Below are positions 30,177-48,118 of a stretch of DNA of 64,000 nt, in pieces. The notes below the pieces were generated by a model. It ran no database searches and was not told where the DNA came from. It worked only from the letters and a program-made list of their open reading frames with translations. A program made the position numbers and the translations under genes. The stretch spans positions 35,154,001 through 35,218,000 of the forward strand of contig OZ076411.1 in assembly GCA_964187785.1 (NCBI GenBank), given 5' to 3'. Source of the stretch: Amphiscolops sp. MND2022 (Eukaryota). How positions within the stretch are numbered: position 1 is the stretch's first letter; each line of letters starts with the position of its first letter.

Positions 30177-30461
30177 TAAAATCCTATGTTTGCAAAGATT
30201 GACGAGAAGAAAGGGTCCTCTTTTTTTCGTCACAGTGGGCCTTATTTGGATTTTTCCACTAGAGGTTCGCTTCATAGAACGTTTTCTAGCCTTTAACGTA
30301 CGCCATTTTGATATTTTTGTCATTGTGCGACTCTTTTTGAGATTGTTTCTCACCGAATAGTCGCAAACACTGCGAAAGCTCACAACATACCAGTATCGAT
30401 TTTCTGTACTTCTTCAAATTGATATACAGTTTTTTTTAAAAAATTAACGTTTCTAATTCAA

Positions 30462-31151
30462 CAATAGCTTTTTACTATGCTTCAATTGGTTTCAACTTTT
30501 GGTGCATGGAGCCTTTGTTGGGTAAAAACGTTTTCTATGTCTTTAAAGTGACTAGTGGGTATTTTCAGAAGGGAAAAATAATACAAAGTGAAAACTTTAA
30601 ATTATCTTGAAAGAACAAAATTGAGAATATTTATGGCGAATAACATGCGACTTGCATTGGGCTCGGTTATTGGATGTTATGGTTCTGCTATATTTCTGTT
30701 TTTGATAATAATTCTGCAGGTGCAGAACCTCGATTCAGTTGATGAAATATTGAAATCTGCCTTGTGTATTAAGGTGCTTCTAATAAAGGAGCAGCTGAAA
30801 TAGGCTGACAAAATTTTAAGTTTTGCACCCAGTGGTAAGAAGCTTTCAGTAAAGGAGCAGCTCGAATGAGGGGGCTGCTGAACAAATGGGCTGTTGAATA
30901 ATGCTCAACAAAAGTGATAAATTTTTTATTACTGTGAGGAAGCTGTAATTTTGAAAACGAACACGAGGCTTTTTAACACTGCCTGGATGTAAGTGAAAAT
31001 TTTTAAAATTTTAAAAGAAATTGCACATAGATAAAAATTAAAATGTTACATTGTGCAAGTGTACACTGTATAGTATTAACTATCATTTAATGTATATAAC
31101 GTATATCTCACATGTAAATAAAATGTCACTTCCTGTTTGCCGTCCGCTACA
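30462..31151 (-). repeat. 3' LTR, about 690 bp
   Basis: Starts TGTAGCGGACGGCAAACAGG on the - strand directly after the PPT. It is collinear with 41652-42352 and the other copies. Confidence 0.85.
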
Positions 31152-31163
31152 TTGCCCTCCCTC
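31152..31163 (-). promoter_or_regulatory. Polypurine tract
   Basis: GAGGGAGGGCAA abuts the TG of the 3' LTR. Confidence 0.8.
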
Positions 31164-31199
31164 ATAGGAGGTTGCGTCCCCGCAATCTAACTCATTCAA

Positions 31200-32135
31200 A
31201 CCAATCGGACATATGCGAGTCGCAATCCAGGTTCGCAAAGTGCGGCGAATACCTGACATGCCCCAACGCTGATATACTCTGTTGAGCCGGGGATCCGTGA
31301 GTATGTTTTTCGCCTCCTTATGACAGGGGTTTGTTGGGACACCTCAGCTGGGGTGGAAGGTTCTTGTCGAGGTGTACAAGTCTCAGAAGATGCCTAGCAT
31401 GACGATTGATCTTTTGTGCTTCGGCTGTTGGGGACAGGCCCAGTATATAAAAGATGTTATCATCAATAAAATCGAGTTGAAGAGTATATGTGGAAAGTTT
31501 GTATTCGAGCATGTCAGTGTGAGTCGGCAACCTCCAGTCAGGAGGCCTCCAGTTTGTGTTTGAAGGATAGCCTCGCTCTGCTCGAGGCTGTGCTTGAGTA
31601 GAGAACTATTTTCCTCTGTAAATGTTTTGAGACGGCCCTTGAGGGCCTTAAGTTCCCCTGTGTGTTCGGTTAGTGTAGCTGCCTGTGAAGATAGTTGTTG
31701 TTGAACGGTGGAAAGTGTTCCCTGGGTTGTCACGAGTTCCTTTTCTTTTGACTCTCTGAACATCATCTGCTCACAGAGCAAGTCGAATGTATGTATAATT
31801 TCAGTGTGATTTGATGGCTGCGGAGCAGGTCTCTTCGAACTCTTCCGAAGTTCGCCAACGGAAGCAAATTCCGTGCAAGTGATTACATGCCCTCCTCGTC
31901 GTCCGAGGACGCAACTACTCCGACATAACAGGTGCCCACATTTAATTTTGGTGGTACTGGCGAGCAATCACAAATTGCGGGAGGGTGAGTCCACTTCTAC
32001 GCTCGTGCTGTTATTTGTTTGGGCAGGAAGCCAAACTTCTGTAGCGGGCCGAGCAAAGGTACGATTGTTGGAATTAATTTTTTTGAAGCACGACAGTTTG
32101 TGTAAGGGGGTTGACTCGTTCGATTCGGTAATCAT
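31200..32135 (-). pseudogene. Extra retrotransposon ORF: RING-like zinc finger, coiled coil and J-domain (DnaJ), with one stop and two frameshifts
   Basis: (R)NL*LLASTTKIKCGHLLCRSSC..ITC (RING remnant) and a heptad-rich segment ELVTTQGTLSTVQQQLSSQAATLTEHTGELKALK. These are followed by NIFYILGLSPTAEAQKINRHARHLLRLVHLDKN and, after a frameshift, KEAKNILTDPRLNRVYQRWGMSGI. Confidence 0.72.
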
Positions 32136-32349
32136 CTCTGTCCAAAATTCGGATTACATCTCCCTCGGCCAGAGGCTGTACGCGACCGCTGCTGATGAGG
32201 AAGGGCGCTGGGACTGGAGCTGCTGGAAACTGAACCTGAAACAAAAATTGATTGCACCCTTCATACTGTTGTACTGAGATCCTGAATGGGACGCGGAAAC
32301 GTGTCTGCTAGGCACTAATTGGTAATCCAATTAGGAAAAAAGGATTGTA

Positions 32350-32630
32350 TTTTTGCTCACGGAAACGTGTTATAAGGACTAGTTGCACAGCGAAGGAACT
32401 AGGATTGACATCCTAGAAAAAAGTAGTTAACACGGAGCTATGTAACCAAGGCACTAGTTGCGCAGCGAAACAACTAGGAAAAAAGACAACCTAGAAAGAA
32501 AGTAAATACTACGGAAACGTGTAACAAGCCGCTAGTTGCGTAGCGAAGCTATTGGGGAAAAGACAAACTTGAAAGTAATTAACACGGAAATGTGTAACAA
32601 GGCACTAGGTGCGTAGCGAAGCAACTAGAA
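32350..32630. repeat. Four tandem 73-79-bp units, each with a CTAGTTGC-N8-GCAACTAG stem-loop
   Basis: CACGGAAACGTG-like anchor at 32358, 32431, about 32510 and 32583. Confidence 0.8.
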
Positions 32631-32699: not shown

Positions 32700-34880
32700 T
32701 CATGTTGACGTAGACTCATAAGTAGGTGCACTAATATTAGAGTAAACACGTGGTTGAACTGTGGGGGCGTTTGGTGCAGCATAATTTGATGGTTTCGGTT
32801 CAACGTGGCGAATTGTTTCACGGGCCAGCAAAATCAGTGCACGGAATTCAGGGTCCGTCAAATACAAAAATGAAGAATCAGTTGAATCGTACTCCGGCGG
32901 AAGGGAGTCGACTATAATAATGAACCGGCCCGAAGTAGTCCGGAAAAAGCGTTGAGGATTGGTGAAAAGCTGTTGCCAATGACGGCGGAACAATGTAAAA
33001 CCCATAGAAATGGTTAAAAGTGACAATGATTGACAATGACGAAAAGCAGTGTTGGTAAATAGGATTGTAAAGCTGCTGATCTGACAGGCGAGATCAGAAA
33101 ATATTATTTGATTCAGGTGATCCAAGGTCTCCGGGGACATGTGTTGAACGTCTGGCAGTTCGGCTAGCTCCTTTCGTTGGCTGCGCAAAACCGCTTGACG
33201 ATCTTCACTAGTAGAAGTTGCCTGAAATTTGGCGCTACCAATAGGGGGTACATGTACCAAGACCTGATTCAAAGACGGAGCCAATTCAATAGAGGCAAGG
33301 AAGGGCTCCGGCCGGGTATCACAAAAGTCCATCTCAGGGTGAAGAACTTGTTCACCCTGGTTAAAAGATAGTGTACTCGAACAGCTAGGGCGTTTGACAC
33401 AAGCCTGACAGGTGATGGTAGAGATGGAAAGGCCGTCAATGCGGCTATCGGTTTTGAATTTGAGGGTGGGAGACCGTTCTGAGGAGTGTCGGTTAAAAGT
33501 ACTGCGCGGACTTCACAGTTGTGTAAGCGGGAATGTGGTAATTGTAGAAAAAGGGTCTCAGGCAAAGAATTTTTGTCTGTTGTTGTCGAGACACCTTTTC
33601 TACATAGTTTAATACGATTGTTACCCGAACATTGCTGCAACGTACTAGCACAGAGCTCTGCAAATCTATTATCAGTTGAGACTGCCTAAAACGGGTTCGC
33701 AAAATTGAAAAGTGATGCAGTCTTCTGGTCATTGTTGGGCTGATACAGAGGCGTGTCATGATAAATGTCCAAGTTCGACGACTTTGAGTTCATTGGGATC
33801 CCAAATATGAGAGATATACCACGTGTTATCGAAGTTACTTCAAGTACTACTTGTATCTCATAGTAAATTGCCCCAAAACCAGGTAAAATTGCTGTGGAGT
33901 TTTGTTCCTCGCTTTACTTCGTCATCTGCTAAGTGTTTCACAATTTGCGCCACTAGCTAATGAGCAGATAGCGGAGTACAAGGAAATACGGTAAGCGTAA
34001 AAAGCGGCACGGTAAGATTTGAAATGGGTGTGAAGTGTTTCGACCTGATGGGCATAATTTCACAAGAATTGTGTCACGCTGATGCGCCGAACACTTACTC
34101 TATCGCATGTAAAACTAGTGGCAGCCAAGTAGCGGGTAGCGTTGACCAAGTGAAAATCCATTTGTTGGAAACGGAGGTTGACGCTGTCTCTCAGTTTCTG
34201 TACACTTTCTTGGGTCTAACTAATTTTGTTACCGAAATTCTTGTTCCGTGTCTACACGCGCTGCAAAGTCAACAATGTCTCGTTGAGTGCTCAATATTCG
34301 TTCTACGTCGCGACTCAAATATTCTTTTGTGTGACAGAGATTGAAGATGGAGAGAGCATCAAAAGCTGCGTTTTGGAGAGGTTCACCAAGAACCCTTCCA
34401 GCACCAGCTGCTATTGATTTGTGTGGACGAGGGTATTAATCGGTTTGTTTGACGCGTGGTGATATGAAAAATTGACAACCTCGAAAAATGTGCTTTCCTG
34501 TTGCTTGGCCGCTGTCAACCCTGTCTGCAGGAAACTGACTCGTGTTGCAAGCTGTTGTAAAAGAAGATTGTAGGTGTTATTAATCTCGGTAAATTCGCCG
34601 TTTGTATTGATATATATGCCTCCAATGCTTTTGCGAGCTGCTTTGAAGTTGATGTTGATGGCGTTGGTAATATTGATTTCAGGAATTTTTGGGAAGGCGG
34701 AGAATACACGGACTTTGCTTTCGCTTCTCGAGGTAACAGCTTGGTATTTTAACACGCTGCACCTTGTTTGAATACAGGTTTTTCCTAGTCATCGTTGAGG
34801 TGCGTTGTGAACTGCACATCCGCAAAGATCAGGACTGACCAAAAGAGCACAAACAGGAACCAGGAATGTTTCGAGATTGG
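32700..34880 (-). pseudogene. env-like membrane glycoprotein remnant (multiple stops and frameshifts)
   Basis: Located after IN. It has a signal-peptide-like FLFVLFWSVLIFADVQ (34812-34868), a heptad-rich segment (ETLLTLQRV..ISETQESVQKLRDSVNLRFQQM), a Cys motif TITCQACVKRPSC..DFCDT and a late hydrophobic stretch in ORF 32700-33332. Confidence 0.55.
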
Positions 34881-35699
34881 AAGTAGGGAAATCCTGAAAA
34901 ACAGAGTAGCCTTGTTAGGCAGTTGATCAGAGCTAATTGAGGGAAAGGTTTTTTTGCGATAATTTCAAGTTACTTTCGAAGTTTTTGAAAAAGGGTTTGT
35001 GTTTGTTATTAATGTGGACCGGTGGTGAGTTGAAGTCGGTTAGATCAGAAGGTAGTAAGGCAGTACACATGGTTTCCGCCAAACGCTGCGTGCATGTGTT
35101 TGCGCGGAGATTGTAAGGCCTGGTTTTCATGTCGCGGAACTGAGCAGCGACGTGTTCAATTAAGTTTCGATGTTCTTTCGGAACAGGTGAATGGGGTGCT
35201 GGATCTTGAAGACAGCTTGACTTCTTACCTGATTGGATTGTGAGAGTGGCGATCGTCTGAAGACCAGGAGATTGGAAAGGTGACGGTATTTAGTCACTGG
35301 AGTTGAAGACAGGTAATGAAGGATGGTTCGACGAGTTAGCAGTGTTTCCTGTCGACTGTGGGGTTAAGGAGGTATGGGGATTTTGATGAGCAGGACTGCA
35401 GAGGCCGTTGTTTAAAATGCATGCAGCACCTATGCGATGTTTCGTGTGTTGCGTTCAAGTCGTTATTCCGTGTTGGGCAATTCGAGTGGACTCGTTTAAC
35501 GGGCTGGGGTAGGTTAGTGGACCTAGGCCAAAGAGGTTTGGACCTATCGCAATGAACAATCATTTCTTTAGATGTTGCGATTTCTTTAGTTTTGTATGTG
35601 ACATCGTTGAAACAGTCGAGTATCAAACATGAGCCTTTCCACGGGGTGTGGAACATAGGCGTTTGGCCAACTGGAACCATTGGTGTGTGGAGCAACACT

Positions 35700-38600
35700 T
35701 TGTCGTTGTTCGTAGGTAGTACCGTTGTACGTTGCGTTGCAACGTTTTTGGTTTTTCTTATTGTTGCCTCGCGTTATTTATTAACTGATATCAACATTTT
35801 TTATTCAAGTTCAAAAGGTCATTGGTTCTTCGTTTTCAGGTGCATGATGTATCGAATCGATTGGCAAGGACTTCTCTCGCCCATGATCAAGAAATTGAGG
35901 CGAATAACTGGTTGATTTATGTACAAATAACCGGTAGACCATCATCACGTACGGTAACTGTTGCGTCCAGTTACTTCGTTCAGCGTTTACACTTTGCTAG
36001 CATGTTTTGGAGTGTTCGGCTCATCCGCTCGATCACTGCATTAGACTGAGCGCCTAAAAGCAGTTGTTCTTGTTTTTTAGGTGCCTTGTTCTTTCTTTGT
36101 CATGAAAGTCTAGAACAACTTGGATTCAAAATTACGTCGTTGATCACCGTGAATACTGTAAAGGCAACCTAATCGACAGATCCAATGTTCGATAAGAGCA
36201 GTAGCCATTGTTGTTGCTTGTTGATCTGGCAAAGGTACTGCCTCATACCATTTTGTAAAATGATCCTCTATCAACAGAATTACCTTGTTTCCATTCGAAA
36301 CCGACAATTTGCCCATAAAATCGATTCCAATTTCAGAAAACTTGGGACTTTCAGAAATCTTTTCTGGTCATGCTAATTTTTAGGACATCGTTCATTTCAA
36401 AATGACAACGCATGTGCTCCAGAGACGCTCGAAGTGAAGTTTACGTTGGCTTTTTTAGAAACGTTCATTAGTCAACAAGTGGTATGGGAAGCGGTGTTCA
36501 CCAGGTAGTGGTTGTACCCAGAGGGGCACAGTTTGCTTCGAAATGTCCTCCGGATACTGCGATGGGAACTTTCGTTTGAATGATCGGGCTTTTCCAGAAC
36601 TCATTCTGAAATCAGCTGAGATACAGTGTACTAGCGACTCAGATGAAGTGAATGAATCTCCCTTCACTTCACGATACTTGACAATGCTGTTTTCTGTAAT
36701 AAGTATTGCTTCAATGGGTACCTTGTGTCTGCTGTTGTTCTATAAGGTCGCCTGCTTTGCTTTTGCTCTGAGTATTCACCATTCGTTGAGCTCAATAATA
36801 GCGTGGAGTGATATCCTTGCTGTATCTTCAGGAACGAAGTTGATACGGTGGTTAGGTTTTGCGTTCGGCCATTGCTTGTCATTGTGGTAAGCTTTTGTAT
36901 TTGTGGCATGTTTTTGCTGGGCCTTCTCGAGCTACTTGGTCAGACGTAGTAGGTGTTCCTGACAGCATATTGGCGTGTCCAATAGATTTGCCGGGTCTGT
37001 TGCACTTCGTAATCGAAGGCCGCTAACGTTTCCATCCAGCGTGCAATGAGACTATCTGGGTCTTCGAAATTATGTAACCACCGAATGGCCCTATGGTCTG
37101 TGATAATTTCTCAATTTTTTTCTCTCTCTGTGTGTGTAACAACTTTCTCCTGAGTAGGAGTTGTAAGTACCCGGTGAAGTGGACCATGGCTAGAAGTTCA
37201 GGTTTTGTTGCCGAAGACTTTGATTGCGGCTTGGAGAATGCCTTTGATGCATAGCATATTGCACGTTCCTGGCCATTTTGAACTTCGGCCAAAACGGCTC
37301 TCATGGCGAGTTAACTGGCATCCGTATACAGGGGGTGAAAGGATCTTTGATTGTGGGAAGGACTAAACTTGGGGTTGTGAGCAGTCGTGCTTTCAAATCA
37401 TCAAACGCTTGTAGTGCCTCGGTTGTCCACTTGAAGGGGGATGTTGTTTCACTTGCTGTATGCAAGGGGCGAACTATTTCAGCAAAAGTTTTGTTCTAGC
37501 GTGTATAGTAGAATCAGAAGCCCAAGAATGACTTCACCTGTGTGGGCCAACTAGAAGGCCTTCTTTGCTCATGACATGGCCCAAGAAATGAACCTTGGTA
37601 CGGGAGAATTGACACTTCAGGGGATGTATTTTCAAGTTGGCATGTCGGAACCTGCTTGTAACTTCTCACTCGTTCGATGTGTTCCTCTGGTGAAGCGGCA
37701 AAGATGATACAATAGTCAAGGTAGGCAGTACGATAAATATGCCGCAAAAGTGGAAGTTATCTTCAAGTGTAAAGTGTATTTTCCGTAAAACGCGAGCGAA
37801 CCGTGTTCTAGTCAAACAGTGCATCGTGTTCATCGCGGATTGTGATGCACCTTGTAATCAGAAATTGCGGATTGTGGTCATTGAGCGTAATTAGAAAACA
37901 GTGGAAACCAGTCAAGAATGTTCAACCTACAATTGATTCATCCGTAATGTGAATGAAGTGTAAATTAGGCAATCTTTGACTAGAATTCACTTTTGGAGTA
38001 ATTAGACTTATCATTCGATGAAAATGGGGAAAGTGAACAAAGTTTCACTACTTTACACCAAAGATCCTATTGCTTTCTTACTTAACAAAAACGCTTCACA
38101 TTGTAATTGCCGCTGCAGCAGTCGGTGATTAGTTTGACTGTTTTACACTATTCATTTTGACTGGTTTACACTAGTTTGACTAATTCACAATTACAGGAAA
38201 AGAAAAGAGCCTTGTGAAATGTTTCGTGTTTTTTATATGCGCGGACAACAACCTGCGAGACCGTGCAGCAGAAAAACATCTACTTTTCCAACGCATCAAC
38301 ATGGCCGTGCACAGGTCGAACGGGTCCTTTTTGTAATACATATTCAGGCGTCAAATTGAAAACAAATATTTGTTTCATGTATGTAGTGATCACTAGAGCT
38401 GCGCCCCAATCGGCCGCTGTTAACAATGCACGGTAATTAATAACCATTCTAAGAGCGATCGAAGCATCTTGAGTTATTTTTACTCACGGTGGGTACAAAA
38501 TTTTTCTTCAATCAAGTTCGAGCTGTTAATACGGCGTATCAAATCCAACTACTATTAATACTGTGGTATCTGGTAACTGCTCAAAACTTGTGCTTGCCTC

Positions 38601-40549
38601 ATTTCAGTTGCGTTTATGCTAACATGGCCATGTTTAAGATGATAAAAAGATCTGTGGTAACTTCTCGTCGAAATTATTTGAGAGAAAATGAGAGTAGAGA
38701 AAATCGAAGCAAATGTGGGGTGTCATAGTAATAGAGTCTTTTGTCCTCGAATCATGTTTTTCCTTGGGTCTAGGGTTGAGACAAGTAGACTTGTTTTGTG
38801 CGATTCAATGTCATAATCGTATATCCAATATTGGACCACGAAGAAAAAAATCACTAATTCACACCCTTCGCCAAAGTGAATTCCAGTCAAAATGTGTACC
38901 AGGTTAGAAAAAAAATTATGAATGCTTCAGAGTGGAAAACAGTCAAAGTTATCACTAACTAGCACACTTTGATTGTTTTTCACTTTGAAAAAGAATTCCA
39001 GTCAAAATGTGTACCAGGTTAAAGTGTAAAACAATCAACTTCCGTCTTCGTGTGTGAAGTGGAAACCAGTCAAAGTACGTAATTTTAGATAGTGGAAAGT
39101 AGTCATTTACTGCGCGTAACGTGTGATTTTGATCACTGCGCGTAACGCCAAATCACACAGCGTAACGAGCAAAACACGTAACGCGTATTTGAAATAATAT
39201 CGCGTTTTTATTGGCTGTTAATGGAACTAGCAAGATCTTGCTAGTTCGTTGCGGTATATGTATCGTAATGGGGGATAGTTGTTTTCCAGATAAGTTTTGC
39301 TAAGACGATTTCCATTGTATTTTGGAACGTCGTGGGCTATATGCGAGACCCATCGGAATATGGAGAGGCGTTCTTCGATTTGGAATTTCAATCGGCTTTG
39401 ATCCCGGATGTACGTTTATCTTGTATCGTAGCTTCACAACGACCAATGTTCCATTGGTTTTGCGAAAACACATCGTCGTATTCATGAACAAGTTCTGCGA
39501 ACCCTTTTTTTTACCTTCAGTGGAATTTCTGGACTAACTCTATCCATTACGTTTTTCGAATGGTACGATTCATCGTTTTCGTTTGTTGTACTTCAAGCTT
39601 TTTGTTTCGGTTACTACGTTTTGTGTGGGTGATTTAGAGACTACTTCCGAAGTCTTTTCCGCACAAGATAAGTGGCTCTTCAGAATTGTCGATAGTTACC
39701 GGGATATTTTTTCTCAGCAAAGTTGAACAAAATGCTTGGGGCCTCTGCATCGAACCGTTCGTGCTGCTCAAAAATTGCTACACCGTCATTCAATGGGCGT
39801 TTCCTGTCCGTGGTGTCTTGGTGGTACCGAAACTGTCTCCGACACCACCACTCTGAACACAGTTGTCGTAGCATCAGTGAGCTGACGATGATACAAGGGG
39901 ACTGTCGTCTTTTCATCGACGCGCAGTAAATCTTGGTAAACTAACGGGTCGCATTTATGAGTTTTCAGGAAGTCTAAGCCGAGTAGACAATCGGCTTCTG
40001 CTTGCTCCAGAACATGAAACGCATGTTCGTTTCGTCTCGGACCGATTTTCAAAGGTTGTTGCACAATGCCACGTGTTACTATAGGTTGAATATTGGCTGC
40101 CACTAGCTTCGTGTTTGACGGTTTCCCCTCTAATTTAGTCAAATTCTATTTCCCAAGTGCCTCAGAACTCTGGCAAGACACACTCGCTCCACTATCACAC
40201 ACAGCCTCAATCGCTGTATCAAAAGTTTTTATACCAGCCTGACATAAGTGCTGCCGTATTAAATTGTTGCAGGAAATCTTCGAAATCACCTTTTCCTGTG
40301 AAAGAAAGACTTTGGCATCAGGCATGACGGAAGCGGGCGGGGCTATGTATGGAACACTAGTTGTGGTTGTCTACCGCCAGGCAGAGTGGAAAAGGAAGCT
40401 GTTGGGGTTGTACTAGTGTTAGAAGCCATAGTAGGTCCTTGTATGGGGGCTTGGGAACTACTTGCGCTACCACTATTAACTGGGGTTGTAGTAGTGGTGG
40501 TCACCGATGTCGAGGTGGCTGTTGCGGGGGTGCTTGGTTGGGTGCTCAT
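35700..40549 (-). pseudogene. Gypsy gag remnant and pol (PR, RT, RNase H, IN), heavily disrupted
   Basis: PR: AVCDSGAS (about 40190) and ADCLLGLDFL. RT: PMGL..TFQ and AYLDY.IIF. RH: ERAICYASKAF..KPELLAMV. IN: EDHFTKWYEAVPLPDQ..SIHGDQRRNFES. Most of gag and early RT are deleted. Confidence 0.9.
37731..39265. mobile_element. 1535-bp non-autonomous TIR element (TA target, Tc1/mariner-type) inserted in the RT domain
   Basis: TIRs CGATAAATATGCCGCAA and TTGCGGTATATGTATCG match at 15/17. TA lies on both sides (37729-30, 39266-67). Removing the insert rejoins the RT region ..IVLAKLIW..PHYC / AYLD. Confidence 0.8.
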
Positions 40550-43500
40550 TCTTTTTTTGGAACGTCTGCGCTAGATCTAGAACGTTTCACATGTGATCCG
40601 TTCGCAGCGGACCAGAACAGACTAGGTGGTTTGCAGTCGGGTAGACCAAATGGAATGGATTCGTTAAGTGTACTGCTAGAAATTGAATATGAGAAGCAGA
40701 AATGTTGGCTAATTGAGGTACATAAGGACGCACAAGAAGCTTTTACACTTGCATTATCTTCGACACGACCATACGGGATTGTAGAACAAATGTTTCGATG
40801 TTGCCAATTTTGAATAGCTTCTAGACGCAAATCTATCGACAGTTCGTGTGCTGTGAAACGCCGTTCTGGTTCATGCGATAAAGGAGTTTTGAAAATTTTC
40901 ACTTGGCAGAAGTAGCAAACAATGACTAAATTTCGCGGCGGTGTATTTGATAAAACGGAAACAGGTATGCCGAAAGTGTACATCAGGCCGCTCTCACAGA
41001 GACGTATAGTCCAATCGTTGAGTTTGGAGTGCTTTACGAGTTATATTCATCTTGTTGATTTTTTACGACATCGCACGAAGAGCTAAAACGGTTAAAAGAA
41101 GCGCGAAACAGAGAGTCAAGAGTAGCAAACTCAAAACGCAGGACGTGAACAACTGTTTTTCACCTTTTACGCTGTAAACAGGCGGAGGACTAGGTGGTCG
41201 AAGCAGTCGTTGAGGCAAAACGTACAACGTGGGGTGAGAATGCTTATTATGAGTACTGGGCATATCGACAAAAACACTCACAGCTGTGATTAGAATTTAG
41301 GTTACCAAAAGAAAACGAAACTAATTTTGAAGAAATTACAACTCAAACGCTATTGTATGTTTTACGACAAGCATTTATCGTGTATGCCCTTAAAACTTAT
41401 CGGCCTTGATTCAAATGTGCCATTTTAAAGCCTGAGACACTCCGAAGCGGAAAGACAGCATTGAGCTAGGCACGGACCATGTCTGGATTGGAAATCTTAT
41501 GGGCAACACTGACAAACCAGGAAATAGCACATTTCAGAGAAAGAAGTTTTCGGATCGGGTCCATGGTTGAGAATAATTTGATTCTAAGTTACTTTGATTT
41601 TATGAAAGAAAAGTTCCTTTTTTTACAGATATATCACTCCTGTCACCATTTTAACTAGCTTTTTACTAGGTGTTAATTGCTTTCATTTTTTGATGCGTGG
41701 AGCGTTTGTTGGGGTAATCGGGTTTTCTATGACTTTGAAGTGACTAGCGGGTATTTCCAGAAGAGAAAAATTATACAAGGAAAAGAAAACTTTAAATTGT
41801 CTTCAAAGAACAGAATTAAGAAGAGTATATTTATGGCGAATAATTTGCTACTTACATTGGGCTCGGTTATTGGATGTTATGATTCTGCTGAATTTCTGTT
41901 TTTGATAATATTTCTGCAGGTGCAGAACCTCTTTCCAGTTGTTGAAATTTTAAAATCTGCACTGAGTAATAAGGGTCTTCTAATAAAGGAGCAGCTGAAC
42001 TAGGCTGACAAAATATAAGTTTTGCACCGGGTAATAAGAAGGTTTCAATAAAGGAGCAGCTGAAATATGGGGCGGCTGAAGAAATGGGCGGTTGAATAAT
42101 GCTGAACAAACGTAATAAAAATAATACTGCAAGGAAGCTGTAATTCTGAAAACGAACACGAGGCTTTTTAACACTGCCTGGATGTCAGTGAATATTGTTT
42201 GTAAAGTTTTAAAAGAAATTGCACATCGATAAAAATTTTACCTTGTATAAGTGTTGACTGCATAGTATCAAGCAACACCTAATACAAGTAAGGTATTTTA
42301 GGTATATATCACATGTATAAAAATGTCACTTGCCTGTTTGCTGTCTGCTAGACTATCAAAAATTCGATATATCCAAATTTTTGTCCTTACCGAACTAGCT
42401 TTTTTTACACTTGCATTATCGCCACGACCATACGGGAATTTTGATCAAATGTTTCGATGTTGCCAATTGTGAATAGCTTCTAGAGGCAAATGAATCGACC
42501 GTTCGTGTGCTTTGAAACGCCGTTCTGGTTGATGCGATGAAGGAGTTTTGAAGTTTCACTTGGCAGAAGTAGCGAGGAAAAACTAAATATTGAGGCGATG
42601 TAATTGACAAAACGGAAACAGGTATTCTAAAAGTCTACATCAGGCCGCTCTTAGAGAGACGTATAGTCCAATCTTTGAGTTTGGTGTGCTTAACAAGTTT
42701 TTCTTCTCTTGTTGTTTTCGTACTACATCGCACGAAGAGCTAAAACGGTTAAAAGAAGCGCGAAACAGAGAGTCAAGAGTAGCAAACTCAAAACGCAGGA
42801 CGTGAACAACTGTTTTTCACCTTTTTCGCTGTAAACAGGCGGAGGACTAGGTGGTCGAAGCAGTCGTTGAGGCAAAACGTACAACGTGGGGTGAGAATGC
42901 TTATTATGAGTACTGGGCATATCGACAAAAACACTCACAGCTGTGATTAGAATTTAGGTTACCAAAAGAAAACGAAACTAATTTTGAAGAAAAGATTACA
43001 ACTCAAACGCTATTGTATAAGTTACGACAAGTAGTTACCGTGTAGGCCCTTAACACTTATCGGCCTTGATTCAAATGTGCCATTTTAAATCCTGAGACAC
43101 TCCGAAACGGAACGACAGCATTGAGCTGGAAAGCTAGACACGGACTATATCTGGATTGGAAATCTTATGGGCAATACTGGCGAACCAGGAAATAGCACAT
43201 TTCAAAGAAAAAAGTTTTCGGATCGGGTCTAGGGCTAAGAATGTTTTGATTCTAAGTTACTTTATTTTTATGAAAGAAAAGTTTTCTTTTCACATATCTC
43301 ACTACTGTCACCATTTTAACTAGCTTTTTACTAGGTGTCAATTGGTTCCATCTTTTGATGCGTGGGGCGTTTGTTGGGGTATTTGTGTTTTCTGTGTCTT
43401 CAAAGTGACAGTGGGTATTTCTAGAAGAGAAAAATTATACAAGAAAGTGAAAACTTTAAGTTATCCTCAAAGAAAATTGAGAAGAGTAATTTTTTGGCGA

Positions 43501-46500
43501 ATAAATTGCTTCTTACACTTTTTGATAAAAATTCTGCAGGTGAAGAACCTCGATTCAGTTGATGAAATTTCAAAATGTGCACTGTGTAATAAGGGTTTTC
43601 TAATAAAGGAGCAGCTGATATAGGCTGACAAAATATTCAGTTTTGCACCGGGTAATAAGAAGGTTTCAATAAAAGAGCAGCTGAAATAAGGGGGCGGTTG
43701 AAGAAATAGGCGGTTGAATAATGCTGAACAAAAGTAGTAAAATTATTTAATACTGCAAGGAAGCTGTGATTCTGAAAACGAACACGAGGCTTTTTAACAC
43801 TGCCTGGATGTCAGTGAAAATTGTTAGTGAAGTTTTAAAAGAAATTGCACATAGATAAAAATTTACCTTGTATAAGTGTAGACTGTTTAGTACCAAGCAA
43901 CACTTAATATAAGTAAGGTATATTAGGTCTCAAATGTATATAAAATGCCACTTGCCTGTTTGCTGTCTGCTGCACTATCAAAAATGCGATATATCCAAAT
44001 TTTTGTCCTTACCGAACTAGCTTTTACACTTGCATTATCATCGCCACGACCATACGGGAATTTTGAACAAATGTTTCGATGTTGCCAATTGTGAATAGCT
44101 TCTAGAGGCAAATGAATCGACAGTTCGTGTGCTTTGAAACGACGTTCTGGTTGATGCGATAAAGGAGTTTTGAAAGGTTTCACTTGGCAGAAGTAGCAAG
44201 GAAAAACTAAATGTTGAGGCGGTGTAATTGACAAAACGGAAACAATATGCTAAAAGTGTACATCAGGCGCTCTTAGAGGGCGTATAGTCCAATCTTTGAG
44301 TTTGGGGTGCTTAACAAGTTTTTCTTATCTTGTTGGTTTCGTACGACATCGCACAAAACAGTTGAAAGAAGCGCGAAACAGAGAGTCAAGAGTAGCAAAC
44401 TCAAAACGCAGGACGTGAACAACGGTTTTTCACTTTATTCGCTGTAAACAGGCGGAGGACTAGGTGGTCGAAGCAGTCGTTGAGGCAGAACGTACAACGT
44501 GGGGTGAGAATGCTTATTATGAGTACTGGGCATATCGACAAAAACACTCACAGCTGTGATTAGAATTTAGGTTACCAAAAGAAAACGAAACTAATTTTGA
44601 AGAAAAGATTACAACTCAAACGCTATTGTATAAGTTACGACAAGCACTTACCGTGTAGGCTCTTAAAACTTATCGGCCTTGATTCAAATGTGCCATTTTA
44701 AAGCCTGAGACACTCCGAAGCGGAACGACAGCATTGAGCTGGAAAGCTAGACACGGACTATATCTGGATTGGAAATCTTATGGGCAATACTGGCGAACCA
44801 GGAAATAGCACATTTCAAAGAAAAAAGTTTTCGGATCGGGTCTACGGCTAAGAATGTTTTGATTCTAAGTTACTTTAATGTTATGAAAGAAAAAAGTTTT
44901 CTTTTCACATATCTCACTACTGTCACCATTTTAACTAGCTTTTTACAAGGTGTCAATTGGTTCCATCTTTCGATGCGTGGGGCGTTTGTTGGGGTATTTG
45001 TGTTTTCAATGTCTTCAAAGTGACAGTGGGTATTTCTAGAAGAGAAAAATTATACAAGAAAGTGAAAAGTTTAAGTTATCTTCAAAGAAAATTGAGAAGA
45101 TAAATTTTTTGGCGAATAAATTGCTTCTTACACTTTTTGATAAAAATTCTGCAGGTGAAGAACCTCGATTCAGTTGATGAAATTTCAAAATCTGCACTGT
45201 GTAATAAGGGTTTTCTAATAAAGGAGCAGCTGATATAGGCTGACAAAATATACAGTTTTGCACCGGGTAATAAGGTTTCAATAAAAGAGCAGCTGAAATA
45301 AGGGGGCGGTTGAAGAAATAGGCGGTTGAATAATGCTGAACAAAAGTAGTAAAATTATTTAATACTGCAAGGAAGCTGTAATTCTGAAAACGAACACGAG
45401 GCTTTTTAACACTGCCTGGATGTCAGTGAATATTGTTTGTAAAGTTTTAAAAGAAATTGCACATAGATAAAAATTTTACCTTGTATAAGTGTAGACTGTT
45501 TAGTACCAAGCAACACTTAATATAAGTAAGGTATATTAGGTCTCAAATGTATATAAAATGCCACTTGCCTGTTTGCTGTCTGCTGCACTATCAAAAATGC
45601 GATATATCCAAATTTTTGTCCTCACCGAACTAGCTTTTACACTTGCATTATCATCGCCACGACCATACGGGAATTTTGAACAAATGTTTCGATGTTGCCA
45701 ATTGTGAATAGCTTCTAAAGGCAAATGAATCGACAGTTCGTGTGCTTTGAAACGACGTTCTGGTTGATGCGATAAAGGAGTTTTGAAAATTTTCACTTGG
45801 CAGAAGTAGCAAGGAAAAACTAAATGTTGAGGCGGTGTAATTGACAAAACGGAAACAGGTATGCTAAAAGTGTACATCAGGCCGCTCTTAGAGGGACGTA
45901 TAGTCCAATCTTTGAGTTTGGGGTGCTTAACAAGTTTTTCTTATCTTGTTGGTTTCGTACGACATCGCACAAAACAGTTGAAAGAAGCGCGAAACAGAGA
46001 GTCAAGAGTAGCAAACTCAAAACGCAGGACGTGAACAACGGTTTTTCACGTTTTTCGCTGTAAACAGGCGGAGGACTAGGTGGTCGAAGCAGTCGTTGAG
46101 GCAAAACGTACAACGTGGGGTGAGAGTGCTCATTACGAGTACAGGTCATATCGACAAAAACACTTACAGCTATGATTAGAATTTAGGTTACCAGAAAGAA
46201 AACGAAACTACTTTTGACGAAAAGATTACAACTCAAACGCTATTGTATGTGTTACGACAAGCACTTACCGTGTAGGCCCTTAACACTTATCGGCCTTAAT
46301 TCAAATGTGCCATTTTAAAGCCTGAGACACTCCGATGCGGGAAGAAGGCATTGAGCTGGAAAGCTAGACACGGACTATATCTGGATTGGAAATCTTATGG
46401 GCAATACTGGCGAACCAGGAAATAACACATTTCAAAGAAAAAAGTTTTCGGATCGGGTCTAGCGCTAAGAATGTTTTGATTCTAAGTTACTTTAATTTTA

Positions 46501-46527
46501 TGAAAGAAAAAAGTATTCTTTTCACAT

Positions 46528-46545
46528 ATCTCACTCCTGTCACCA
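46528..46545 (-). promoter_or_regulatory. Primer-binding site, tRNA-Leu-like (other copies end at 41648, 43313, 44928)
   Basis: TGGTGACAGGAGTGAGAT matches the complement of the 3' end of animal tRNA-Leu(CAG), TGGTGTCAGGAGTGGGAT as I recall it, at 16/18. It lies directly inside the LTR boundary. Confidence 0.7.
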
Positions 46546-46816
46546 TTTTAACTAGCTTTTTACTAGTTTTCAATTGGTTTCATCTCTTGATGCGTGGGGC
46601 GTTTGTTGGGGTAATTGTGTTTTCTATGTCTTCAAAGTGACAGTGGGTATTTCTAGAAGAGAAAAATTATAAAGAAAGTGAAAACTTTAAATTATCTTCA
46701 AAGAAAATTGAGAAGAGTAAGTTTTTGGCGAATAAATTGCTTCTTGCACTTTTTGATAAAAATTCTGCAGGTGCAGAACCTCGATTCAGTTGATGAAATA
46801 TTAAAATCTGCACTGT

Positions 46817-47225
46817 GTTTTGGACACATTTCTGGGAGGTTTCTAAGAATATATTTTTATTTTTCGGTAGTTTTCGGTGCTCTGCCTTCTCACGTTCAAA
46901 ACTCCCGTCTTGTTTGTACGCCACAATAATACGATGCACAGAAGGTTTTGAGACCAAAAGGTCTTTCAAACTTTTCGATTCAGAAAAGTTTTGAAGGAAT
47001 TTCTGAATGACCTTTTTTCTGGTTTCATCACTGGTTTTCCTCGGACCCATAATTTCAATGCTTTCAGAAAACGTGAATTCAAAGACTGAGCGTTTGAGCG
47101 GCAATGAACATGGCTAATGAATTTTTTTTGTCAACATTTTTTGGCGGGTGTTTAATTAGCGAATTAAATCGAGCGTTCACTTTTGCATGTTCAAACTACC
47201 TGTTGGTTCGGTTGCTACAAACAAG
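46817..47225 (-). mobile_element. Tc1-like transposase N-terminal (HTH) fragment replacing part of the outermost LTR copy
   Basis: MGPRKTSDETRKKVIQKF..SKSLKDLLVSKPSVHRIIVAYKQDGSFER resembles the Tc1 paired-type HTH. About 380 bp of LTR sequence is absent at this position. Confidence 0.6.
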
Positions 47226-48118
47226 AGTGTAAAGTGTCACTTTCTTTCTGCCGTCTGCTACACTAACAAAAATGCGATGTATCCAAAGTTTTGTCCTTTC
47301 CGAACTAGATATTGGCTGGGTGAAGCGGTGGAAATACCTATACTCATACCTTTTTGACCTTTTATGCATTAAAGCATGAACTTGTCTCCAGATTTGTCAT
47401 TTGTATAAGCATTTTAGTTGATATTTCTTCCAAACAATTGAAGTTTGTATGTGTGCGATTTTTTCCTGAAGGCGTGTTGTAACAGTATCCAAAAGATTTC
47501 ACAGTGTCGCTGCGGGTCTCGTGTTTCTTTTCATTAGTCACCGCGAAATGTTTATCATATATCTACTCGGAATAATCTCAGGTAGTACGATTACCTTGGG
47601 ATTCGATCGAACAAGAACAAGAAAAAATACTTTGTTGTCCAGTATATTTATAATTTCAACCGATTTGTCATATCGCCAAAAGCTGGATCGATGAATTGGT
47701 TTCAGTTGTAAAATGCTCGTTAGCTAGCTCAGTCGGGATACTGTTTTACGAAGGTGCCTTAGTTTTTGTGTCCAAACTATCCACTCTGAATTTCAAAGCG
47801 CTGTAAGACCACAACCACTTGCAGGATTCTGTATCAGGGTTGTGTTTCTCTTCAGTATGTTCTGTTCACTTCGCGAGCCTCGCGCCAAAAGTCTATCTTT
47901 CAAATGTTGAATGAGGACATGGGTTGTATGCAGTGCAGCGTTACCTGGGGCGCTGTCATATCAACAAATATTCGTTCTTTGGGTTCTGCTAATGCTCCAA
48001 CTAGTGATCCATGTTCTGCATAGCTTTTCCATTCCATCTGCTAGTGAAGACAAGACAGTTGCTTCATTCGAATCACATTCTTTTCCCATTTTTTTTTCGG
48101 ATCTGTTTTCAGTTTTCA

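Follow-up and report, generated by a model that had tools for sequence, protein, structure and literature searches.

The 64,000-nucleotide stretch of Amphiscolops sp. MND2022 DNA analyzed here, the whole of which is hereafter called the window, contains an old and broken long terminal repeat (LTR) retrotransposon of the Ty3/gypsy type, in which a decayed open reading frame (ORF) for a J-domain protein is located between the remnant of env and the 3′ LTR. Coordinates are window positions unless a locus label precedes them, and the J gene and the surrounding element are all read on the minus strand. The element extends from ~30457 to ~42380 (~11.9 kb), over which BLAST with a young member of the family gives 73-82% identity. 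Reading from its 5′ end, the element comprises the 5′ LTR (41650-42380, with an approximate outer end, placed by BLAST), the broken start of gag (~40225-40623), a pol remnant with an internal deletion (35014-40274; protease, reverse transcriptase (RT), RNase H, a macrodomain piece at 36369-36712, and integrase), an env remnant (32703-34937), an env-J spacer (32288-32628), the decayed J ORF (31195-32235), a short spacer that includes the J stop codon (31164-31194), the polypurine tract (PPT) GAGGGAGGGCAA (31152-31163), and the 3′ LTR (30457-31151). The gag, pol and env genes are all broken, as determined by tblastn, which also located the macrodomain piece and, together with BLAST, the pol remnant. 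The 3′ LTR was delimited by BLAST with the young copy, by direct repeats (30465-31005 and 41656-42200) and by an edge TG at 31151. Given that the two LTRs are only ~85% alike, the element is an old insertion. The PPT lies immediately upstream of the 3′ LTR, and matching purine runs were found in three other lineages of the family. Between the J stop codon and the PPT there is a motif, GAGGACGCA(A/G)CCT, whose window form is GGGGACGCAACCTCC at 31164-31191; it is also found in L023, L036 and L038 and persists although the J proteins of those lineages are just 35-55% identical.

What remains of the J gene in the window is a dead copy, and the fourth gene that it represents is real. The window copy shares 82% nucleotide identity with the nearest open copy, from which it differs by at least 10 frame-shifting indels plus in-frame stops, and its C-terminus (...DCDSHMSDWFE) ends at 31195. 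In six-frame translation, the J-domain remnant (31248-31458) is split by a frameshift into a first half at 31360-31458 in frame 0 and a second half at 31248-31316 in frame 1. A first-pass annotation of this DNA had proposed such a split J-domain, with an HLD tripeptide one base away from the canonical HPD, upstream coiled-coil and RING-like regions, and a position inside the element directly before the PPT. The peptides quoted for the two halves are indeed present on the minus strand in frames 0 and 1, and the HLD at 31366-31374 has the codon CTC where eight open copies have CCC, CCA, CCG or CCT. The first half alone matches Pfam DnaJ with only 16.3 bits (E 0.011), under the cut-off of 27.8 bits, whereas open copies of the same gene reach 40 bits (E 4.3e-10), so that the profile match is significant in the family. 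The proposed position was likewise borne out, with the stop codon at 31192-31194, the PPT at 31152-31163 and the LTR starting from 31151. Upstream of the J-domain remnant, and by projection of the window onto an open copy, we could place a coiled-coil region (31540-31874, approximate limits, from an AlphaFold2 helix of the open copy), an acidic proline-rich linker (31875-31978, with its true frame being frame 2 at 31928-31978) and an N-terminal SH3-like beta-barrel with an SSGRV...VVLQK motif (32077-32193), the last defined by a 37-sequence alignment and an AlphaFold2 model with fold matches to KOW and Tudor domains.

The RING-like remnant fared differently. It had led to a model in which a RING E3 ligase, a coiled coil and a J-domain couple ubiquitination to Hsp70, and in its favor the window does contain a CxHxxC...C string (KCGHLLCRSSC...) in frame 1 of 31875-31943. 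That string, however, is read in a different frame from that of every open copy, and the homologous frame 2 gives the acidic proline-rich linker. The open copies match no RING family in Pfam at E <= 0.1, zf-RING_UBOX reaches only E 1.3 in the window, and the alignment of open copies has just two conserved cysteines in the linker region, not the eight expected of RING zinc ligands. We therefore discarded the RING reading, to which we assign a negligible probability; with no RING domain, nothing ties the protein to ubiquitination. The proposal of an accessory gene of an LTR element thus stands with its J-domain and without its RING part.

A DNA search of the organism's own 1.07-Gb genome returned more than 20 further copies of the stretch (13 large pieces plus small ones), many of which have an open frame of 373-382 codons with the HPD intact, or ~357 codons counted from the predicted start. 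Protein searches of the genome recovered ~12 stop-free J copies at 92-100% amino acid identity, at least five stop-free copies of one lineage at ~54% identity (342 codons), and several more lineages at 30-40% identity (355-407 codons). A young copy is located at C8:34682096-34694798 (L023+L024). One young element measures 12,703 bp and has 712-bp LTRs that are 99.7% identical; its frames are, in order, gag (432 codons, with Retrotrans_gag and CCHC knuckles by Pfam), protease, RT/RNase H/integrase including Integrase_p58_C, env (~750-810 codons), a spacer with ~80-nucleotide tandem units, and the J ORF, which ends ~40 nucleotides before the 3′ LTR. Two diverged lineages have the same plan, with LTRs 100% and 99.9% identical and with 409 and 449 codons in gag, 1617 and 1598 in pol, 788 and 805 in env, and 342 and 365 in J. 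There are thus three lineages with near-identical LTRs (99.7-100%) in which gag, pol, env and J are all open. The LTR-gag-pol-env-J-PPT-LTR architecture was found in at least five diverged lineages of the genome, in elements of 12.7-12.9 kb. Assignment to Ty3/gypsy follows from LTR pairs of 537-780 bp, a TGG-starting sequence downstream of the 5′ LTR that resembles a primer-binding site, the PPT, the CCHC-type gag and a Pol in which the Pfam domains are in the Ty3/gypsy order of protease, RT, RNase H and integrase. A 134-codon frame antisense to the N-terminal and linker part of J (L008:1678-2079 and the same place in all young copies) is probably a by-product of codon usage.

The J protein has ~330-360 residues, carries no signal peptide and no membrane segment, and consists of four parts in the order SH3-like beta-barrel, proline-rich acidic linker, helix of ~110 residues and C-terminal J-domain, the last followed by a cysteine-containing tail with the pattern CCG..G..R....C..C after helix IV. 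This layout is that of a class C J-domain protein with a C-terminal J-domain. Pfam DnaJ (PF00226) matches an open copy over profile positions 2-62 of 63 (40.0 bits, E 4.3e-10) and copies from two other assemblies with 34.5 and 31.1 bits. When phmmer was run against the PDB, all 40 of 40 matches were J-domains, including Ydj1 as the best (1.3e-4) and DNAJC5 (E 2.7e-4). The HPD is present in eight open lineages, which share the stretch LLRL(V/I)HPDKN while synonymous sites differ, and it was also seen in 38 retrieved-protein contexts.

AlphaFold2 with a nine-sequence alignment predicted a disordered linker and, in agreement with the earlier proposal of a coiled coil, a helix at residues 126-236 with a predicted local distance difference test (pLDDT) score of ~90; from this model, the ~110-residue helix is probably a dimerizing coiled coil. 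For the N-terminal 125 residues, modeled with 37 sequences, a six-stranded barrel was predicted at residues 10-66 (pLDDT 84-93). It matches KOW, Tudor and chromo folds, the best being the Spt5 KOW domain (Z 7.4, root-mean-square deviation 2.1 Å over 56 residues), followed for instance by the SMN Tudor domain (Z 6.9), levels that indicate fold class only. Protein, HMM (hidden Markov model) and look-alike searches detected no sequence relative of the barrel and linker outside this element family, and ESM Atlas look-alikes were uninformative (best score 0.78).

Searches of public protein sets returned 13 relatives by a word-based method and, with an HMM profile, 814 at E <= 1e-3 and 127 at E <= 1e-10. 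In four assemblies (ERZ26859043, ERZ25074608, ERZ976241 and ERZ1742291), a J gene follows an env-sized ORF behind a Ty3/gypsy pol. ERZ26859043 holds several lineages of J-bearing elements, and ERZ976241 (Tara Oceans, marine plankton) has a 12.8-kb contig with a pol of 1593, an env of 767 and a J protein of 305 residues. The closest copies in the Amphiscolops genome share only 52% identity with the ERZ26859043 proteins and 50% with those from Tara, so these come from other organisms. Between lineages, Nei-Gojobori ratios of nonsynonymous to synonymous substitution rates (dN/dS, omega) were 0.05-0.28 for the whole ORF and 0.03-0.21 for the J-domain part. The elements, then, carry a conserved fourth gene under strong purifying selection that lies between env and the PPT and encodes a J-domain protein.

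These results also bear on whether the J ORF might be a one-off capture of a host DNAJ fragment, or a chance resemblance, without any role. The window copy by itself would allow such a reading, given that it is broken and that its J match alone is under the Pfam cut-off. Against it, the ORF holds one fixed position across dozens of copies, which represent at least five lineages of the Amphiscolops genome plus four further assemblies, and omega is 0.03-0.28. Copies across lineages and assemblies and the selection test rule it out for practical purposes, and we give it hardly any probability. Among five lineages, J identity (27-55%) tracks that of gag (50-70%), pol (58-70%) and env (58-77%), a co-divergence that, as judged from these sequence comparisons, fits common descent with faster change in J. 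Two young sub-lineages (L021:8454-9599 and L023:7852-8970) are 97% identical overall, with synonymous divergence (dS) of ~0.1 in the N-terminal two thirds of the gene and of ~2, which is saturated, in the J-domain segment. This dS contrast indicates that one of them received its J segment by recombination from a distant lineage.

Several lineages have no ATG ahead of the conserved barrel, and all have a pyrimidine tract followed by (C/T)AG 40-70 nucleotides upstream of it. In the window, the predicted 3′ splice site (pyrimidine tract plus CAG, 32236-32256) would make the exon start with the G at 32235, as in all lineages. Each LTR of seven lineages, including that of the window (last exon base 41856), contains one AT|GTAAGT donor-like site in otherwise unrelated flanks. 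The donor would end the first exon with AT, the J exon would start with G, and the join would create an AUG, such that the J gene would be translated from a singly spliced subgenomic mRNA, with a predicted N-terminus of MFQFPAAP... in the young lineage. We scanned whole elements for sites of the type pyrimidine tract plus YAG|G at which "AT" joined to the exon opens at least 250 codons. The scan returned only the start of env, with a methionine and a signal peptide, and the start of J, plus one spurious site within an ORF of the degraded L032; a fourth lineage fits the splice model after relaxation of the pyrimidine threshold. In the Tara element, the donor is AAG|GT and the J exon begins tag|ATG with a start codon of its own, which is the change to be expected if the join normally makes the start codon. 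On the strength of these comparisons, splicing with a split start codon seems quite likely. Four sequencing runs of a single sample, none of them recorded as RNA, matched the locus as DNA contigs and showed no splice joints. A different leader donor, at element position 1004, together with a leader ATG, was discarded since neither env nor J would be in frame with it.

In several lineages (the C8 copy L023+L024, L022, L038, L026 and L028), env is likewise without an ATG. The env exon is predicted to begin with the G after a pyrimidine tract plus AG, where the AT of the same LTR donor would give a methionine followed by the signal peptide; in lineages where a base other than G follows the env acceptor, an ATG is encoded within the exon a few bases downstream. 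In several lineages, a single LTR donor would thus serve env as well as J. The lack of an ATG in the J frame of several lineages and the acceptor-like site before it would also be expected if J were a 3′ exon joined to env, which would yield a membrane-anchored Env isoform with a cytosolic J-domain. We regard this arrangement as very improbable: three lineages have no strong donor inside env, the LTR donor AT gives an in-frame start, and the lineages without that AT carry their own ATG.

In four lineages (alignment A3), env encodes a basic furin-type site followed by a hydrophobic Ala/Gly-rich fusion peptide. Heptad regions come next, and toward the C-terminus a membrane segment precedes a tail of ~95 residues that is conserved; the predicted N-terminus has a signal peptide. 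These class I fusion-protein features, known from the open copies, assign the elements to the envelope-carrying Ty3/gypsy group ("errantiviruses" in the wide sense), so that the initial designation as a Gypsy element was correct and yet fell short of what the element carries. No F-family homology of env was detected in Pfam at E <= 0.1, and a profile search of the PDB with env returned coiled-coil noise only. The Env tail (L022:12-296, minus strand) hardly varies from lineage to lineage. Its sequence includes PTLPPR, a match to the class II pattern of SH3 ligands, PxxPxR, and one can do no more than speculate about a link between this peptide and the SH3-like barrel of J.

The spacer between env and J has two to five sense-strand hairpins of the form NNNCG-UUUC-CGNNN in most lineages examined, located in the window (32288-32628, minus strand, where a tandem array of 73-nucleotide units occupies 32358-32628) and at L021:9642-9905, L023:8977-9302, L027:9661-9864, L032:9685-9821 and others. 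The three stem pairs left free by the search pattern covary (AU/GC, CG/UA and AU/GC), with 5 of 72 cells unpaired, and in one element five of the six hairpin copies cluster in the spacer, with none on the opposite strand. A second hairpin, CTAGTTG...CAACTAG (variant CCAGTTG...CAACTGG), was seen inside the 73-83-nucleotide tandem units of some lineages. A tandem repeat search of the C8 array found none at periods up to 500. Such hairpins raise the question of whether the J protein could be a regulator resembling Rev, Rex or Rec that multimerizes on the hairpin array and controls export or splicing of the element RNA. A 3′-proximal gene probably expressed from spliced RNA, a long oligomerizing helix, a KOW-like barrel, whose fold is often nucleic acid-binding, and two to five covarying-stem hairpins would all suit that role. 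A J-domain, however, has no known part in such regulators, no conserved basic RNA-binding motif was found in the protein, and the C2 lineage has no UUUC hairpin, which together make the role improbable.

An additional domain is present in Pol, between RNase H and integrase, where we observed a macrodomain resembling that of TARG1/OARD1. The full domain is found at L038:6566-7228 (minus strand), L034:4537-5229 (plus), L036:7119-7811 (minus) and L022:4242-4934 (minus). Pfam Macro matches at the same place of Pol in every lineage, scoring as high as 23.3 bits in one of them (cut-off 22), and a profile built from four lineages matches human C6orf130/OARD1 in the PDB with E 2.2e-41 (145 bits, ~146 residues). 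All four lineages share the TK and GCGxD positions without change; by reference to human TARG1, we take their lysine and aspartate to be the catalytic residues. RNA viruses are known to use macrodomains against host ADP-ribosylation. In the literature searched, we found no report of a macrodomain or a J-domain in an LTR retroelement.

The macrodomain enters into one of the two leading views of what the J protein does, that of a counter-defense adaptor that would use its barrel and linker to capture a host restriction or silencing factor and pass it to Hsp70 for remodeling. The rate of change of the J protein is about double that of Env and Pol (27-55% versus 58-77% identity), fast change being common in host-facing proteins, and its N-terminal fold resembles Tudor and chromo readers. 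The presence of the TARG1-like domain in the same elements is in line with this view, under which it would be a second anti-host module. On the other hand, a fold likeness of Z ~7 is common among small barrels, the alignment shows no evident aromatic cage, and omega lies far under 1. A counter-defense adaptor is therefore possible, if on the unlikely side.

In our preferred interpretation, the ORF is the fourth gene, encoding a J-domain protein, of an envelope-carrying Ty3/gypsy lineage, is expressed from a singly spliced mRNA and acts as an Hsp70 adaptor, a combination that we consider probable as a whole. The one known job of a J-domain is to switch on host Hsp70. Because the J-domain with its HPD is under purifying selection, recruitment of host Hsp70 by the J protein is very likely: the J-domain would dock on host Hsp70/Hsc70 and trigger its ATPase, while the barrel and linker would hold a client. 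The combination of a barrel, an oligomerizing helix and a C-terminal J-domain suggests an adaptor that brings such a client to Hsp70. As for the client, we rank the element's own particle or Env traffic first, in assembly or uncoating, although the chance that this is correct is somewhat short of even; a host factor, as in counter-defense, comes second and is rather less likely. Something else accounts for the remainder, and a Rev-like role acting on the spacer hairpins trails well behind the first two.

Several points weigh against this interpretation. The case for Hsp70 recruitment draws on general knowledge of J-domains, and splicing, the start codon and expression are deduced from sequence comparison alone; an upstream AUG in exon 1 may precede the J start. 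A minority of the database members have HLD, RLD or HPE in place of HPD, although these are probably decayed copies. The J-domain helices (residues 260-336) were modeled at a moderate pLDDT of 60-79, and Foldseek searches with the whole-protein model gave mostly J-domain matches that were weak (E 0.01-0.1). Finally, with regard to a client within the particle, a three-chain fold prediction of the Gag capsid region, the Env tail and the N-terminal part of J scored 0.13 against a mark of 0.34, which counts neither for nor against a contact.

Other features of the window and its relatives concern the decay and amplification of element ends. Within the pol remnant, ~1.5 kb at 37751-39261 is unmatched to the family and contains inverted repeats (38120-38172 and 38931-39093); this segment may be a nested insertion. 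Adjoining the 5′ LTR of the old copy, 42403-47300 is made up of ~3-4 tandem 1.6-kb units, each consisting of a 5′ internal region plus an LTR. At L025 (C8:55924000-55933999), stop-riddled pieces of the 3′ half of the J ORF plus the LTR start are repeated every ~0.5-1.2 kb in what looks like further tandem amplification of an element end.

Envelope-carrying Ty3/gypsy elements of metazoans were recently surveyed by Chary and Hayashi (eLife 2026, PMC13524379), who scored three ORFs only and whose text contains no mention of DnaJ, a J-domain, an accessory gene, a macrodomain or ADP-ribose. The elements described here resemble the errantiviruses of that survey in their LTR-gag-pol-env order, their Pol domains and their near-identical multiple copies, as well as in the furin-type site, fusion peptide and C-terminal anchor of env, which are features reported for F-type env. 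They differ in having one more gene, downstream of env, and one more domain, within Pol. In sequence comparison, their env has no F-family match in Pfam.

Polyomavirus T antigens have their own J-domain with an HPD, which uses host Hsc70 and acts on Rb-E2F complexes. The likeness is that of a virus-type element encoding its own J-domain. The T antigen J-domain, by contrast, is N-terminal, belongs to a DNA virus and is fused to helicase or PP2A-binding parts, whereas the retroelement protein carries its J-domain at the C-terminus, preceded by a barrel and a coiled coil; the sequence relation to T extends to the domain only. Cellular class C proteins with a C-terminal J-domain, such as auxilin/GAK, have a client-binding N-terminal part, a layout that the J protein would share, and DNAJC5 is among its best PDB matches, but the J protein has no clathrin-binding, PTEN-like or cysteine-string region. 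The nef, tax/rex, bet and sag genes of complex retroviruses are comparable in their position between env and the 3′ LTR, in a probable spliced subgenomic RNA and in their faster evolution. To our knowledge, none of them encodes a J-domain protein. The family described here, moreover, is Metaviridae-like and not of the Retroviridae, and its splice-assembled start is deduced. LTR elements of bdelloid rotifers are also of the Ty3/gypsy type and have taken up host-type genes, the captured ORF3 being a GDSL esterase or a DEDDy exonuclease (Rodriguez et al., 2017, PMC5408684). Those ORFs, in contrast to the J gene, encode enzymes that replace env, and there is no DnaJ or chaperone ORF among them.

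Current descriptions give envelope-carrying Gypsy elements three genes and regard accessory genes as characteristic of complex vertebrate retroviruses. In the lineage described here, purifying selection has maintained a fourth gene in different species. This lineage provides a testable case of a retroelement that brings its own co-chaperone and, with it, an entry to a step of replication or host conflict that needs one. The split-AUG splice design and the Pol macrodomain suggest a richer host-interaction toolkit than has been recognized, one that searches confined to gag, pol and env miss. It is tempting, though decidedly speculative, to view the clade as "complex" in the sense of complex retroviruses, with an Hsp70-adaptor gene, an ADP-ribose-removing macrodomain within Pol and spliced start codons for env and the accessory gene; within that equally tentative scenario, the barrel would seize a host defense factor or the element's own hairpin RNA. 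If that scenario held, these elements would provide the first described example, among reverse-transcribing elements of any kind, of an accessory gene that hijacks a chaperone, and likewise the first of a macrodomain.

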